Virus record (IMG/VR): IMGVR_UViG_3300048924_000191
Coordinates: 62,001-126,000 of that record
DNA length: 64,000 bases
Direction: 5' to 3' (one strand)
Below the pieces are notes generated by a model. The model was not told the origin of the DNA. It did not search any database and saw only the letters and a program-made list of their open reading frames with translations. The translations under genes were made by a program, and so were the position numbers. This document shows, piece by piece, positions 2,924 through 10,322 of this stretch (position 1 is the first letter of the stretch; every line of letters starts with the position of its first letter).

Positions 2924-3274
2924 TCACGCCCCACCAGTCCTCGTGATCGAACAGACTCTTTCGAGCACTCGATCCATGTCCACCTGAGGTACGGATTCCT
3001 CCGTGTGTAGCAGATGGATTTTACCCTCTGTCAAAACGGACTCCGCGTTCTTTAAGCGTACATCTGCAAAGCTCTGCAGTGCGCTGTAGATAAGCGGATT
3101 CGCTACCTCGTAGTACGAGTCCAAAACAACTGCAACTGCTTCCAGATCGCCTCCGGAAGCGTGCAGGGACTGTACATGATCGACGATGCGACAATTGTGT
3201 TTACCCAGCTTAGAGAAGACATCATTCTTCTTCATCGCTGGACTCTTCTCCATCGTCATCTTCAACTCCTTCAT
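2924..3274 (-). CDS. Hypothetical protein (start uncertain, possibly 3235)
   Basis: ORF in operon orientation; followed by hairpin and T-run. Confidence 0.55.
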   Translation of the reverse strand: MKELKMTMEKSPAMKKNDVFSKLGKHNCRIVDHVQSLHASGGDLEAVAVVLDSYYEVANPLIYSALQSFADVRLKNAESVLTEGKIHLLHTEESVPQVDMDRVLERVCSITRTGGA

Positions 3275-3374
3275 TGTTGCTGTCGTCTTCCTGACGCGTG
3301 TTGTAATTCACGAACAACTCTTCAGCAACGTCTGCCGGGTCGAGCGGTTTGGGGTCATCAGGAAGGCGAGACAT
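3222..3374 (-). CDS. 50-aa very acidic protein (not in ORF track)
   Basis: MSRLPDDPKPLDPADVAEELFVNYNTRQEDDSNNEGVEDDDGEESSDEEE; GAGG RBS; fills the gap between neighbours. Confidence 0.65.
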   Translation of the reverse strand: MSRLPDDPKPLDPADVAEELFVNYNTRQEDDSNNEGVEDDDGEESSDEEE

Positions 3375-3386
3375 TTTGAATACCTC

Positions 3387-4208
3387 TTACAGGGCGAAGT
3401 GGTAGAGCTGTCCTACGTCACCGACGTCGAGGAGCGGGTACGAGGTAGCTGATACCGAGAGGACCGGAACGTTAGCCCGCCCGACGTATGCGGAGCGCGA
3501 GAAGGTCATAGTTACGGTGAAGGTCTTTTCACGGCATGGGGTTACCTTGATCGGCAGCCCAATTCCGAAACGATGTAGCACTTCATCTACCGACAATAGA
3601 TACAACTGGTGTTGTTCGATCAGATACAGGTCGTTCTGATGCTTAACGTGGAAGAGACGATTGATTTCGTCTTGCAGATCTTTACGCAGTGCGATTCCGA
3701 AACCTGCTTCGAACCCGTCATTGATTGCTGCATTACGCAGGACGTTGTGCGGGGTGTTCGGGGTGTGGACGTGGTAGGCATGGCCGTAATCCGGGAGTTG
3801 GAAGACCACCTTCCGGAAGTCTCGCAACCACTCCAGAGCACTGACGATGGAAGTTTCCTTCACGCCACTCAGCGCCAGGCCCATGATCCCGTCAACAGGA
3901 GGGTTGTTGAGCACGTCATGGAATTCGACGTGAGGGTATTTACCGATCAACTCCTTCAACTTGCCATCATCGTCGATCGCCGCCCGTGCCAGCTCACGTA
4001 CCTGGTAGTTGCTGGTCGCAGCGTCCAGGTCGGCGATGACTTGCTTGATAGCTTCCGCACGACCTACGGCAATGGTACCGATACCACGGTAACCGATCAC
4101 TAAGTTGCTGATGTTGCGCACCGCTGTTTCTACAGCGTTGAGAGGACGGCGCGGCCAGTTACTTACGGCGTTAACGACACGGCGTTCTTCAGGGGACAGA
4201 TAGTTCAT
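3387..4208 (-). CDS. Hypothetical protein
   Basis: 273-aa ORF, AGGAG RBS, early-type promoter upstream. Confidence 0.75.
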   Translation of the reverse strand: MNYLSPEERRVVNAVSNWPRRPLNAVETAVRNISNLVIGYRGIGTIAVGRAEAIKQVIADLDAATSNYQVRELARAAIDDDGKLKELIGKYPHVEFHDVLNNPPVDGIMGLALSGVKETSIVSALEWLRDFRKVVFQLPDYGHAYHVHTPNTPHNVLRNAAINDGFEAGFGIALRKDLQDEINRLFHVKHQNDLYLIEQHQLYLLSVDEVLHRFGIGLPIKVTPCREKTFTVTMTFSRSAYVGRANVPVLSVSATSYPLLDVGDVGQLYHFAL

Positions 4209-4244
4209 TTGTCTTGCTCCTAATGGATGATGGTTAATCAAGAC

Positions 4245-4277
4245 TACAATGTATTACCAGCATATTTTTAAAGTTAC
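4245..4277 (-). promoter_or_regulatory. Putative early promoter
   Basis: GTAACTTTAAAAAT...TAATACATTGT matches the recurring intergenic motif. Confidence 0.55.
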
Positions 4278-4279
4278 AG

Positions 4280-4316
4280 CATACAGACCTCCTAGGACCG
4301 AAGCCCTAGGAGGTCT
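4280..4316 (-). terminator. Hairpin terminator plus GTATGC
   Basis: AGACCTCCTAGG/CCTAGGAGGTCT 12-bp stem. Confidence 0.8.
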
Positions 4317-4324
4317 ACACACCT

Positions 4325-4553
4325 TTTCTGACCGATACTTCATCCGTTAGCACATTCCCGCCCCGGCCACGAGAGAATATGCTAACGGCTGAGCGCTCAG
4401 TCTCCAGCTAGCCCCGCCGCTCCCCTTATAAGCGACGTGACTGAAGGTCGTCCGGGGGAACGACCTGCGGCGGCTCTACCCCGGGAGAGTCGGGACCCTG
4501 GGAGAGCTTGAATCGTACGGTTTGCCCAGAACCGTCCGAAGCATCCACGCATA
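4325..4553 (-). ncRNA. Candidate structured ncRNA 2 (~225 nt, closed multi-stem)
   Basis: 5' GAUGCUUC pairs with 3' GAAGUAUC; long internal stems; G-U wobbles valid on the minus strand; ATTATATG upstream, terminator downstream. Confidence 0.6.
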
Positions 4554-4586
4554 TAATAGTAAACGCTCAGTAAAAGTTTACTGCGA

Positions 4587-4994
4587 CTACCAGCCCATGG
4601 TTCTTGGGCGATTGAGCCACTCTTCGTAGACCTTTCCGTTAGCGGTGGTCTTACGTCCGCTCTTGTAGAACCCACTGGTCAGAAAGGCAGTTTGACTCGG
4701 TTTGTTCTCAGGTCTGATCCATGCCTGCCCTGCCTTGTTTGAAAAGTATTGACGGATGAACTGTGCCGCGTATCGCTTACCGCGGTGTTTTGGATCGATG
4801 TAGATAGACCCTACGCGATAATATCCGCCATCGCCTTTCATCGGCATGATGAACCCGATCGTCTCTCCAGTCGGGAGGAAGATGAGTTCCATGCCGTCAA
4901 GTCCAGCCTTGAGAGATTCTGGTCCAAGGAACGGGTCTTTCATGGCCAGATCAAAGAGTCTCTGTTTGGCGCCTTCTACTGTTTCTTTGTTCAT
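4587..4994 (-). CDS. GNAT-family acetyltransferase
   Basis: IYIDPKHRGKRYA (motif A), N..SQ..F...GF (motif B). Confidence 0.8.
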   Translation of the reverse strand: MNKETVEGAKQRLFDLAMKDPFLGPESLKAGLDGMELIFLPTGETIGFIMPMKGDGGYYRVGSIYIDPKHRGKRYAAQFIRQYFSNKAGQAWIRPENKPSQTAFLTSGFYKSGRKTTANGKVYEEWLNRPRTMGW

Positions 4995-6535: not shown

Positions 6536-9500
6536 ATGTTCAGTGGCCTTCGATCAAAGTTAGGAATGGTGCGAGTCAGCACCAGTCCAAAGTACGTCAG
6601 CGTGGAAGGGATCGCATCCCACCAACTGCTGCGTGACATGCAACGCGTCTGGGGTTCGAAGGCGCTAGCCAACAACATGTTCAGTTTGATCCGCAGTGGT
6701 GAAGTGAAGTTCTTGCACTTCTTCGCACTGGACTTTCTGTACATCATGGAAACACTCTACGCCGACACCCAGACCCGTCTCCCCAAACGTGTCCTGCGTA
6801 AGGTCATCGACGAACTCAAGGCCAACACCTGGCTGGGTGACATCGATAAGGACGTGAAGTCCATCGTCGACATGAGCGTGGTGGATCACGTCGTCTCCTT
6901 CCCGCTCAAGCCGTTCCAGAAAGCGTTTGCCCAACACTTCGGTGTGATGGTGCCGACCTATCGTCTGCGTGGCTACATGCTCGACGCAGGCCCTGGTACT
7001 GGCAAGACCGTTACCGACCTTGTGGTGGCTGCTGGTCTACATGCTGGCAAGGTAGTGATCATCTCGCCGAAGAACGCCGTGGAGCGTGTGTGGGAAGACA
7101 CTCTCAAGGATATCGTTACGCACAAGCGTCCGTACTGGACCAGTGCGCAGAACGCGCCCCTCACCACCGACTCGCACTACTACGTGGTGCACTACGAAGC
7201 CCTCTCGACGCTGGTCGACTTCATCAAGGCGAATTGGAAGGACTTCAAGAACACGTTCGTTATTCTGGACGAGTCTCACAACTTCAACCGTTTGGCTGCC
7301 GATCGGACTCAGACCCTGATCGAGCTCTGCCAGATGCCGTGCGTGGATTACTGCCTCTGGGCATCGGGGACTCCGATTCTGGCGCTGGGTATCGAGTGTA
7401 TCCCGTTCATGCGTTGTGTCGACACCCTCTTCACTCCAGAAGCAGAAGAACGCTTCCGCAAGATCTACGGTCGCGACGCCAAGCGTGCTAACGACATCCT
7501 GCGTAACCGTATCGGTCACTTGAAGTTCCACGTACCGAAACAGGACGTGGTCGACATTCCCGTGAAGACTCACCAGATCAAGGTGAAGATGCCGGACGGT
7601 GAGAAGTACACGCTGGAGAACATCGGTAACATCCTTCGTAAGTTCATCGATGAGCGCTTGGCGTACTACGATAAGAACTTCAAGCACTACGAGGGACAAT
7701 ACCTCTCGGCTCTGAAGCTGTTCGAAGGACACTTGAGGACAGATGTCGACCGTCGCCAGTACAAAGAGTACCAGGCTGCGATCAAAGTGATCTCTTCGGG
7801 CTTCGATCCGAAGTTGATGAAAGCTGAGGCGATGCTTTGCAACAAGTACGAGCTGAAGACGATTATCCCGCTTCTGCCTAACCACATGAAGCCGGAATTC
7901 AAATCGGCTCGCAGTGTGGTCAAGTACGTCAAACTTAAGGTCATGGGCGAAGCCTTGGGTCGTATCGTTGGCGGTATGCGTTCGAAGTGCCATCTGGACA
8001 TGATTGCGCACATCGACTTCGAACACTACATCGACCGGGCTGAGAAGAAGACGTTGATCTTCACCTCCTACGTCGAGGTGCTGGAAGCAACAGCAGATCT
8101 GCTGTTCCACAAAGGCTACTCGCCTGCCAAGGTCTACGGGGCAACCAACAAGGATCTGGCCGGTATCGTCAAGAAGTTCTACGACGATCCTGATCTGAAC
8201 CCTCTGGCTGCGACCTACCAGTCGTTGTCTACCGCTGTACCGCTCACCGTGGCGACGGACTTGCTGATGTTGAACCAGCCGTTCCGTGAAGCTATCCGTA
8301 CTCAGACAATCGCACGAGCTGCGCGACTGGGTCAGGACTGCACTGTCAACGTGTGGGACTTCCTGCTCGACACTGGTGATAAGCCAAACATCTCCACTCG
8401 CAGTAACGACATCCTTGAATGGTCGGCTGCGATGGTGTCCTCGATCGTTGGCGTGAATAACGTCGACCTCGAAACCCTGACGCTGGAAGCGAAAATGGGT
8501 GAGGACGGGATGTGGGAATGCCTCAGCATGGAAGCCGAAAGCTTTAAGAAGAACTTCATCGACATTCGTGATGAAGAGGACCTGGCCCTTGAATCTGCAG
8601 AGACTGAAATGGAACACATCGACCTGCCGAACTACCTGTATCACGGCTCGGCATTCCGCCAGACGGAACTGAAGCCTGGCTTCCAACACACTGGCGAGCT
8701 GGTCCAGTGGGATAACACCGAAGACAACACTTGGCTGTACGCGTCTGACGACAAAGACAGTGCGGTGATGTTGGGAATCTCCTCGGCGATTGAGAAGAAG
8801 TTCCAGCTCAATCGTTATCAGTGCGATAACAAAACCAAGAAGATGATCATCCACGTCGCCGAACCATTGTCGATCAAAGACATCCACAATCTACATGTCG
8901 TGGTGTACTCGATCAAGGCGGATGCAGCGGACGGCTGGATGGCCAACCACAACCCTGCGAATGGAATCAAAGGCGAGTACAAAACTCAGCGCACCATCAC
9001 GTCCAACATCCTGCGGTGTGAGGATGTGCGGATTGCTGACGCGTTGCGTGGCTGGCATGTGCAGATCGTCGTGCAGGAAGCGTCGATGGAAAGTCTCTCC
9101 ACCATCGTCGCCGGCATCAAGAAAGCATTCGGCATCAAGACTCCCGCTGAGAAGCGTAAGTTCGAACACAACCAGGTCATGCAGAACGACATGCGTCGTA
9201 ACGCAGCGGCGGTGAAGGAGTATCTGAGCAAGTACTTCGGTAACCAATCCTGGCTGGCCAAACAGACCTTCAACGAAGAAGTCTCTACCGGCGGCATGTC
9301 TCCAGCTCTTTCGGTCAACGGGAAGTTCCTGCCGACCTTGAGTGAAGTGACTCACGCCGTTGAGCAGACCAAATCGCTGGTCAAAGAGGCTGACGGCTTG
9401 CTGTCCGGAATGGAACATCAGGTCGAATCGATCCGAGACAAGTACGAAGCCAAGATCAGTCCTGAGATCGACAAGGACAATCACGACGAAGTACAGAAGT

Positions 9501-9970
9501 TGGTTGAAGCTGCAGAGAAGGAATTCGCTGCCGTTAAACCGACTGTCTTTGGTCTTAAAGGTCGAGCCAGTCTGTGTGGTCACGTCATCACGACTGAGAA
9601 GGTGGATGCCCGCTCTCACGAGATCTGGTTGGGTCGCAAGATCATTCCAGCTCGAGCTCCTGAGAAGATCAAAGCGCTGACGTCGGCTGAGATCTTGCAG
9701 GCAGTCAAGATCGTTGAGGACTTGCTCACTTGGGCCGATGGGAAGTGGTACTGGCAGGGTTGGTTGGACTTCTCTGGCGGCGATGACTTCATCAGCAAGC
9801 TGCACGAGTACAACGAGCCTCTGTACATGGACTTCATCGATCTCTGGGATTACCAGACCGGTGATCAAGTGTTCACGTCCAGCTTACCATACCCGGCAGA
9901 AGTGGCCGAGGAAGTCAGTATTGCGTTGCTGCACTGGATGGACCGTTCCATCAAGGGCGATACCGACTAA
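6536..9970 (+). CDS. SNF2/DEAD-like helicase fused to two additional C-terminal domains (probable virion protein)
   Basis: Walker A DAGPGTGKT, DESH, ASGTP, QTIARAARLGQ; linker motifs TLEA, SMEA, ALES, SMES; TATG at 6479-6482; only complete plus-strand gene. Confidence 0.9.
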   Translation: MFSGLRSKLGMVRVSTSPKYVSVEGIASHQLLRDMQRVWGSKALANNMFSLIRSGEVKFLHFFALDFLYIMETLYADTQTRLPKRVLRKVIDELKANTWLGDIDKDVKSIVDMSVVDHVVSFPLKPFQKAFAQHFGVMVPTYRLRGYMLDAGPGTGKTVTDLVVAAGLHAGKVVIISPKNAVERVWEDTLKDIVTHKRPYWTSAQNAPLTTDSHYYVVHYEALSTLVDFIKANWKDFKNTFVILDESHNFNRLAADRTQTLIELCQMPCVDYCLWASGTPILALGIECIPFMRCVDTLFTPEAEERFRKIYGRDAKRANDILRNRIGHLKFHVPKQDVVDIPVKTHQIKVKMPDGEKYTLENIGNILRKFIDERLAYYDKNFKHYEGQYLSALKLFEGHLRTDVDRRQYKEYQAAIKVISSGFDPKLMKAEAMLCNKYELKTIIPLLPNHMKPEFKSARSVVKYVKLKVMGEALGRIVGGMRSKCHLDMIAHIDFEHYIDRAEKKTLIFTSYVEVLEATADLLFHKGYSPAKVYGATNKDLAGIVKKFYDDPDLNPLAATYQSLSTAVPLTVATDLLMLNQPFREAIRTQTIARAARLGQDCTVNVWDFLLDTGDKPNISTRSNDILEWSAAMVSSIVGVNNVDLETLTLEAKMGEDGMWECLSMEAESFKKNFIDIRDEEDLALESAETEMEHIDLPNYLYHGSAFRQTELKPGFQHTGELVQWDNTEDNTWLYASDDKDSAVMLGISSAIEKKFQLNRYQCDNKTKKMIIHVAEPLSIKDIHNLHVVVYSIKADAADGWMANHNPANGIKGEYKTQRTITSNILRCEDVRIADALRGWHVQIVVQEASMESLSTIVAGIKKAFGIKTPAEKRKFEHNQVMQNDMRRNAAAVKEYLSKYFGNQSWLAKQTFNEEVSTGGMSPALSVNGKFLPTLSEVTHAVEQTKSLVKEADGLLSGMEHQVESIRDKYEAKISPEIDKDNHDEVQKLVEAAEKEFAAVKPTVFGLKGRASLCGHVITTEKVDARSHEIWLGRKIIPARAPEKIKALTSAEILQAVKIVEDLLTWADGKWYWQGWLDFSGGDDFISKLHEYNEPLYMDFIDLWDYQTGDQVFTSSLPYPAEVAEEVSIALLHWMDRSIKGDTD

Positions 9971-10022: not shown

Positions 10023-10322
10023 TCAATTGACAAATAGGTAACTGGACGTAACACCACGGAATCCAATCAGGTCTTTCTTAGCCCCACGCATTCCATCGGC
10101 CGAGACCTTAGTCAATACTTCAAACTTAGGTCCAGCCTTGTAGAGTCTTTGCAACAACACGTTGGGACATTTGCCTGCATCGAGTTGTGCGATGAGTTCA
10201 CCCAGCTCTTTGTGGATGTCGACCGCGGTAGTTGCGTAGATACGTCCAGTGTCCTCATGAATCAGAACAAACATCCCTCGTTTGTTGAGGTCTGTTTTCT
10301 TCAATGTGTTTTCGACATTCAC
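10023..10322 (-). CDS. Small degenerate GIY-YIG-like protein
   Basis: GMFVLIHEDTGRIY...L..GK.PN.LLQ pattern; canonical Tyr/Arg residues altered. Confidence 0.45.
   Translation of the reverse strand: MNVENTLKKTDLNKRGMFVLIHEDTGRIYATTAVDIHKELGELIAQLDAGKCPNVLLQRLYKAGPKFEVLTKVSADGMRGAKKDLIGFRGVTSSYLFVN

Follow-up and report, generated by a model that had tools for sequence, protein, structure and literature searches.

The window analysed here is a stretch of 64,000 nucleotides (nt) corresponding to bases 62,001-126,000 of the IMG/VR virus record IMGVR_UViG_3300048924_000191 (G000), a record of 243,378 bp with direct terminal repeats. On its plus strand, an open reading frame (ORF) at positions 6536-9970 remains open throughout and encodes a protein of 1144 amino acids (aa), in which a helicase of the SF2/SNF2 type, a domain with a predicted ADP-ribosyltransferase (ART) fold and a domain homologous to the phiKZ head protein gp303 follow one another in a single chain. 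It is fairly probable that this fusion is a capsid-internal precursor of a phiKZ-related jumbo phage, which would be cut by a protease of the gp175 type into a helicase, an ART-fold protein and a gp303-like protein. This reading is carried by the homology of the outer parts to virion proteins, by the conservation of protease-type motifs at the joints in relatives, and by the presence of a gp175-type protease gene in the same genome.

A helicase and a gp303-like module in one chain

The long frame is no assembly accident, since an intact frame of 1144 codons is also present in an independent IMG/VR contig (L011, 3469-6903), the two contigs being 99.8% identical over 8 kb. A single copy of the gene was detected across the 243 kb of G000. 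Megablast of the gene against 50,697 deposited phage records gave no match, indicating that there is no close cultured relative, and in a tblastn search of the same set no match covered at least 80% of the 1144-aa query. The tblastn search did return the helicase, over residues 1 to approximately 660 and with 38-43% identity, from 206 phage genomes, all of which are phiKZ-like jumbo phages. A preliminary description of the DNA, made from its letters alone, had placed the end of an SNF2 helicase near nt 8470, a domain of about 150 residues starting at LPNYLYHGS, and an ASME-S motif at about 9080 in front of a domain of about 295 residues; the homology does stop at about residue 645 (nt 8470), the middle domain occupies residues 697-848 (nt 8624-9079), and the motif lies at nt 9080-9091 with 292 residues after it. 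The motifs that it listed in the acidic linker are likewise at their positions, with an additional S687-A-E689/T (the slash marks the candidate cut), but its TLE-A is not a canonical S/A/G-x-E site.

The helicase, residues 1-645, matches phrog_62 (6e-92) and Pfam ResIII (1.4e-6, above the cut-off), the scores of Pfam SNF2-rel_dom and Helicase_C being below their cut-offs, and its motifs can be read in the translation as GPGTGKT (motif I), DESH (motif II, DExH), SGTP (motif III) and QTIARAARLGQ (motif VI). Among the tblastn matches are RAY gp131, annotated as a 'virion-associated SWI/SNF family helicase' (38% identity, E 9e-135), and phiKZ gp203, annotated as a 'structural protein' (32% identity, E 4e-126). 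On sequence homology, this part of the protein is an ortholog of these virion-packaged helicases, in agreement with the helicase assignment of the preliminary description. A fusion of RAY gp131 to GFP localises with capsids (10.1101/2023.02.24.529968), and phiKZ gp203 is described, by secondary citation where processing is concerned, as virion-packaged, DNA-associated, proteolytically processed and non-essential. Orthology extends over residues 1-660 at 32-38% identity and is accompanied by tail motifs of the S-L-E/S type in the same place: at the spot of T-L-E in the window protein, phiKZ gp203, phage DT01 and FLC9 gp95 have SLE-S, and RAY gp131 has GLE/SFE. The difference is that gp203 and gp131 end about 50 residues past the helicase, whereas in the window protein this tail forms the linker to two further domains.

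The C-terminal domain was compared with phiKZ gp303, annotated as 'structural head protein', by means of a profile built from nine sequences, which aligned to gp303 residues 367-638 with an hhalign probability of 98.6% (E 1.4e-15, 247 columns); the preliminary description had proposed a head protein as the third part of the gene, and this homology bears it out. The alignment takes in the terminal W-x-D-R-S-I-K-G motif of gp303, the window domain ending in a conserved W-M-D-R-S-I-K motif, and over the homologous 290 residues F-G-N-x-x-W-L-x-K-Q is also common to both. An S-x-E site stands just upstream in each protein, S-N-E366/G of gp303 lying within three residues of the position homologous to S-M-E852/S. 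As to the differences, gp303 is a separate protein of 646 aa, and the window protein has a single copy of the module behind an enzyme domain. In the Pseudomonas phage pPa_SNUABM_DT01 the module is a separate gene of 371 aa directly downstream of the helicase, with 26% identity. By secondary citation, gp303 is reported as a processed, non-essential head protein. The AlphaFold2 (AF2) model of the C-terminal domain has a pLDDT of 85, and a fold search with it gave generic helical matches only (Z<=6.6, none convincing), so that no function can be assigned to the domain; Pfam gave nothing usable, and PDB sequence searches with a single sequence and with the profile gave no match. As a separate observation, phiKZ gp303 may contain an internal duplication, as the N-terminal part of the module (...F/Y-x-N-x-x-W-x-x-x-Q-x-F...) matches it twice, at residues 11-107 and 368-499 (L012 2166-4106).

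The protease that would be required is encoded in the same genome, at G000 220995-221621, by a gene that matches gp175 (E 4.5e-26) and phrog_3014, 'head maturation protease' (8e-56). Six paralogs of the inner-body family phiKZ_IP (PF12699) are found just past the right end of the window, at G000 126021-141170 (loci L030-L035); the first 100-150 residues of each are crowded with S-[VLFM]-E-S, and these N-terminal regions are probably, to judge from their motifs, the phage's own protease-trimmed propeptides. Searching G000 with the phiKZ chimallin gp54 as a single sequence gave no match at E<=0.001, and for this reason the phage is called phiKZ-related and is not placed in Chimalliviridae; either the phage is without a shell protein or it has one that has diverged beyond the reach of such a search. 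The head protease, the inner-body family and the virion helicase are common to this phage and the phiKZ-like phages.

The middle domain

The middle domain matches phrog_13483 (E 6e-41), a family annotated without function, and is 39% identical to phiKZ gp282. Among 14 homologs of the domain, at 40-67% identity, His703 (nt 8642-8644), Ser705, Tyr735 (nt 8738-8740) and Glu814 (nt 8975-8977) are invariant. An AF2 model built on the homolog alignment (pLDDT 83, pTM 0.79) was compared with 48,161 chains by VIA-align. The search gave 25 chains at Z of at least 5, nearly all of them ARTs, and those listed are of the ART superfamily without exception. The top match is the lobe of KptA that binds nicotinamide adenine dinucleotide (NAD), with Z 9.8, a root-mean-square deviation of 2.0 over 83 residues and 23% identity, and is limited to chain residues 87-180, the NAD lobe; it is followed by Tpt1, an Rhs ART toxin, pertussis S1, CARDS, Scabin, Arr, LT, diphtheria toxin, DarT, RES and PARP1. 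ARTs dominate the Foldseek list from the PDB, with weak E-values (9e-3 or worse), and also that from a viral library (BFVD), in which DarT, Arr and an 'ART-PolyVal-like' protein are found. A Foldseek comparison of the middle domain had been suggested in the preliminary description, which was reminded of the ART fold by its strands, and the outcome is consistent with that impression. The model topology would put His703 on the first strand, Tyr735 on the strand before a long helix and Glu814 at the start of a later strand, which would be the canonical positions of the H-Y-E type. In summary, the middle domain belongs to the phiKZ gp282 family and is predicted from the model to have the ART fold, its His-Tyr-Glu pattern being unbroken, and an NAD-dependent activity on some target may be expected. 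With bacterial toxins it has only the fold in common.

Although KptA is the best structural match and the strand P-x-[YF]-L-Y-H-G-[ST] is common to both, membership of the Tpt1/KptA family was rejected. The RNA lobe with the catalytic Arg and His is missing from the middle domain, which is therefore no Tpt1, and an acidic linker that cannot be aligned is found upstream in the place of this lobe; there is also no match to Pfam PTS_2-RNA, and the residues at the Tyr and Glu positions differ, Tpt1 having a His and a hydrophobic residue there. An hhalign comparison with E. coli KptA aligned 13 columns only (LPNYLYHGS with PPQFLYHGT) at a probability of 13%, which is no evidence for family membership. 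DUF6886, a lead from a feature search of a protein atlas, was not adopted and is a lead only: its hidden Markov model had no match in the genome, and the shape match has a TM of 0.59.

What the window protein has in common with phiKZ gp282 is the domain, including the invariant His, Tyr and Glu, but the setting is different, as the gp282-type genes of phiKZ, 201phi2-1 and Noxifer are small, stand-alone, leaderless and distant from the helicase, and the window copy lies inside a putative head-protein precursor, flanked by protease-type sites. The annotated start of phiKZ gp282 itself is probably too far downstream: the deposited coding sequence (L003 4001-4507; phiKZ 256563-257069) starts at an internal Met (...DELM/PGF..., the slash preceding the residue after this Met) and omits the conserved LLYHGS strand, while the open frame and homology place the start about 45 nt upstream of the annotation, a PA7-type contig (L026 3974-4507) reading MNKPELLYHGS.

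Candidate cut sites and the arrangement in relatives

In phiKZ, gp175 cleaves at S/A/G-x-E, LSxE being enriched (PMC10449902); the motif of the SPN3US protease is A-x-E (PMC5694885), and propeptides removed by gp175 have redundant cut sites (PMC9026906). The whole window protein contains 18 S/A/G-x-E sites, which is about the number expected from its composition. The preliminary description had pointed to motifs of the head-protease type at the joints of the protein, and motifs of this kind recur at the joints in relatives. The linker cannot be aligned among 11 relatives except for short x-L/M-E motifs, and in the linkers of seven non-redundant relatives 20 sites were counted where composition-preserving shuffles give 10.6 (P=0.0012). 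At the end of the helicase an NVD..x-L-E block is conserved, in which the P3 residue is T in the window, S in L015 and L016, A in L021-L025 and Q in L017, L018 and L020. At the second junction, each of the ten proteins with sequence beyond the ART domain (the window, L015-L019, L021 and P0004-P0006) has [S/A/T]-x-E with S or G after it. This holds even for L021, the tail of which is unrelated; the two-part fusions end just before this point. The pattern [SA][LFMVI]E[SAG] occurs 52 times in the 74,930 aa of the ORFs of the genome, most often in the fusion ORF (4), with the inner-body paralogs next, and counts as supporting evidence only, as it was set after the data had been seen.

In the close clade, ART genes that stand alone encode a leader of 30-55 residues before the domain, in which D-L-x-x-L-[AS]-L-E/A is repeated and a second [AS]-x-E follows, and their equivalents of the sites before the ART domain read LAIE-S (P0002), LSLE-Q (P0004 and P0005) and LALE-A (P0006). 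This leader looks, from its residues, as would be expected of a cleavable propeptide for capsid targeting. An N-terminal propeptide site at S22-V-E24/G of the window protein was considered and rejected, as relatives read VVE, TVE, IIE or VVQ there.

Whether relatives encode the parts separately was a question raised by the preliminary description, and separate genes are indeed found alongside two-part and three-part fusions (Table 1). Exactly at the boundary between helicase and linker, three relatives have genes on the opposite strand for I-TevI-like homing endonucleases with GIY-YIG, NUMOD3 and I-TevI DNA-binding domains. Their insertion point corresponds to window nt 8480-8495, where the window form is uninterrupted, and the junction peptide is found in both halves of the split loci, the helicase ending in ...VDLETMTLDG and the next gene starting with M..DLIELSLEA; such loci have the look of a 'gene in pieces' that arose through a homing endonuclease. 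In the window itself, a 99-aa ORF on the minus strand (10023-10322), 53 nt downstream of the fusion, has a match in PHROG 13862 'endonuclease' (7.5e-6) and none in Pfam; it may represent a homing-endonuclease-like gene that is short or has decayed. In L029, a gene of 425 aa (3711-4988, +) between the endonuclease and ART genes has a weak precomputed Pfam match to phiKZ_IP and no PHROG match, which suggests that the fusion locus is a cluster of head-internal proteins. Nothing supports the antisense frames of 616 and 325 codons (window 7037-8887 and 8891-9868, both on the minus strand), which the fusion gene most likely casts as shadow frames.

Table 1. Parts and candidate cut sites of the window ORF, and arrangement of the corresponding genes in relatives
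Feature	Sequence	Position	Strand	Remarks
Whole ORF P0001: helicase, linker, predicted ART-fold domain and gp303-like domain	window	6536-9970	+	1144 aa
SF2/SNF2-type helicase, residues 1-645	window	6536-8470	+	phrog_62, Pfam ResIII, tblastn
Acidic linker, residues 646-696	window	8471-8623	+	alignment of 11 relatives, shuffle test
T649-L-E651/A, first candidate cut site, at helicase end, non-canonical	window	8480-8488	+	x-L-E block in relatives
S664-M-E666/A, candidate site	window	8525-8533	+	preceded by Leu, and so fits both L-S-x-E and S/A/G-x-E
A684-L-E686/S and S687-A-E689/T, adjacent candidate sites shortly before the ART-fold domain	window	8585-8602	+	
Predicted ART-fold domain, residues 697-848, starting LPNYLYHGS	window	8624-9079	+	phiKZ gp282 family (PHROG 13483)
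A-S850-M-E852/S, candidate site between ART-fold and C-terminal domains	window	9080-9091	+	kept in relatives
C-terminal domain, residues 853-1144 (292 aa), gp303-like	window	9092-9967	+	hhalign to gp303
Three-part fusion	L015-L018			51-56% identity to window
Helicase + ART	L020, L022-L025			
Helicase + ART + unrelated tail	L021			
Helicase, GIY-YIG gene, ART (P0002)	L004			GIY-YIG gene on opposite strand
Helicase, GIY-YIG gene, ART + C-terminal module	L019			
Helicase, GIY-YIG gene, phiKZ_IP-family gene, ART + C-terminal module	L029			
ART alone	phiKZ, PA7, P0003			
ART + C-terminal module apart from helicase	P0004-P0006			
GIY-YIG gene	L004	5192-5935	-	
GIY-YIG gene	L029	2902-3645	-	
GIY-YIG gene	L019	~3090-3900	-	

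Proposed processing in the capsid and its rivals

By analogy with its homologs, the fusion would be packaged in the virion, the precursor being incorporated into the prohead as a single chain. The gp175-type prohead protease would then cut in the linker after Glu666, Glu686 and Glu689, and perhaps after Glu651, as well as after Glu852 at the second junction. Three proteins would result, the helicase (about 73 kDa), the ART-fold enzyme (about 19 kDa) and the gp303-like protein (about 33 kDa). They would lie beside the packaged DNA, and once released they may exit the capsid with the genome at infection. Going by the motifs and homologies set out above, cleavage into three pieces within the capsid is probable; that the cuts fall at these particular sites is a further step that we infer, and injection of the products, which may follow, is the weakest link of the proposal. 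Of the points that bear on the interpretation given in the preliminary description, the architecture, the helicase, the ART-like model, the gp303 homology, the protease gene and the junction motifs have held, while cleavage, ART activity and injection are still inferred.

A number of observations weigh against this proposal. The linker of the window protein, taken alone, is at chance level (3 S/A/G-x-E sites against 1.9 expected in the shuffles, P=0.28), the first site is non-canonical, reading T-L-E in the window and Q-L-E in three relatives, and it may be conserved for the reason that the helicase fold ends there, and not as a cut site; the helicase tail of Eowyn is without any site of the S-L-E/S type. 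With regard to the middle domain, no Pfam match was found for any of its 14 members and no PDB sequence match in single-sequence or profile searches, and His703, Tyr735 and Glu814 were placed on model strands 8-13, 42-45 (then helix 48-64) and 122-125 by the secondary structure of the model. Since phiKZ gp282 has no leader, the gp282 family is not always a head protein. Finally, in a screen for injected phiKZ proteins tagged gp203 and gp303 were made, and neither was among those validated as injected (PMC10449902).

The main rival to processing is a protein that is packaged in the head but remains uncut, a polyvalent protein in which the ART-fold and gp303-like domains travel along the DNA attached to the helicase. 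Full-length transfer is possible for polyvalent proteins of phages and plasmids (PMC5512222), and the chance-level motif count in the window and the non-canonical first site are as such a protein would have them; moreover, the fusion has been kept in several lineages at 51-56% identity, so that the covalent linkage may be useful. However, this is unlikely, given that S/A/T-x-E at the second junction is invariant within otherwise variable sequence, even before an unrelated tail, and that the linkers of relatives are enriched in motifs. In addition, close relatives make do with the parts as separate genes, three lineages being split by a homing endonuclease, and processing is reported, by secondary citation, for both homologs, gp203 and gp303. 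It is very improbable that the fusion is a non-virion enzyme of replication or transcription whose likeness to head proteins is incidental. A second SNF2-type helicase of phiKZ-like phages, RAY gp250, is nuclear and non-virion (10.1101/2023.02.24.529968), and the group 1 SNF2 helicases of jumbo phages have been linked to RNA polymerase genes (PMC7824862), which would give such an enzyme some precedent, but the best matches of the window helicase are specifically gp131 of the RAY virion and phiKZ gp203, at the E-values given above, and a single copy of the gene was detected in the genome. The homology of the C-terminal domain to head protein gp303 and the phiKZ_IP-family gene inside the same cluster in one relative also argue against a role outside the virion.

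A separate matter is what the middle domain would do. It is possible, if somewhat doubtful, that it has the ART fold without being a host-directed transferase, and that it instead binds NAD or ADP-ribose, modifies nucleic-acid ends of phage DNA in a Tpt1-like manner, or is inactive and structural. The best match being the NAD lobe of KptA/Tpt1, a structure solved with DNA and NAD+, is in favour of this, as are the sole profile alignment to E. coli KptA, which spans LPNYLYHGS, the joining of the domain to a DNA-bound helicase, and the lack of a match to any ART family of Pfam. Nevertheless, the Tpt1 RNA lobe with the catalytic Arg-His-Arg-Arg is absent, only the acidic linker preceding the domain, and Tyr735 and Glu814 fit the diphtheria-toxin/PARP/DarT type over Tpt1, following the generally known clades of ARTs; an inactive domain is at odds with the invariance of His, Tyr and Glu in 14 sequences at 40-67% identity. 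A bolder proposal, and quite an unlikely one, is that the virion helicase, riding in on the genome, serves in this clade as the delivery vehicle for a nucleic-acid-directed ART of the Tpt1-/DarT-like kind. Once the head protease had set it free, this ART would act on the ends of DNA or RNA, or on a factor of host defence or transcription, within the first minutes of infection and before phage expression begins.

With processing of a head-internal precursor as the preferred reading, the protein sits conceptually between the processed head proteins of phiKZ, the polyvalent proteins and T4 Alt. Alt is an ADP-ribosyltransferase packaged in the T4 head; the prohead protease gp21 trims it, and it is injected together with the DNA. 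The likeness would lie in an ART-fold enzyme that is held in the capsid, cut after Glu by a head protease and ready at infection; the difference is that Alt is a separate protein of the R-S-E type, whereas the middle domain is of the H-Y-E type, is fused to a helicase and in fold searches stands nearer the Tpt1, DarT and diphtheria-toxin side of the superfamily. Like phage P1 DarB, polyvalent proteins bring several effector-type domains, SWI2/SNF2 ATPases and ARTs included, together in one chain that is packaged and delivered with DNA (Iyer et al. 2017, PMC5512222), and for some of them processing into parts has been proposed or shown (PMC5512222). The window protein likewise unites several unrelated domains in one ORF, namely an SNF2-type helicase, a predicted ART-fold domain and a head module. 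Polyvalent proteins typically have a zincin-like metallopeptidase of their own and a methylase partner, in contrast to the window protein, which would be cut in trans by a prohead serine protease and in the whole of which Pfam and PHROG scans found no peptidase or methylase domain. In the literature searched, no description was found of a helicase-ART-gp303 fusion, nor of gp282 named together with phiKZ.

The clade of uncultivated relatives links the three phiKZ proteins gp203, gp282 and gp303 into one functional unit, and provides a natural example of a phage polyprotein that is predicted to mature by means of the prohead protease and not of a built-in peptidase. The gp282 family (PHROG 13483) gains a testable prediction, namely NAD+-dependent transfer relying on His703 and Glu814. 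Should the enzyme indeed enter the cell along with the genome, it would become a candidate for the earliest step of host takeover or anti-defence in jumbo phages of the nucleus-forming type, and were the helicase in truth its delivery vehicle, the non-essential virion helicase gp203 would gain a concrete role in early counter-defence.

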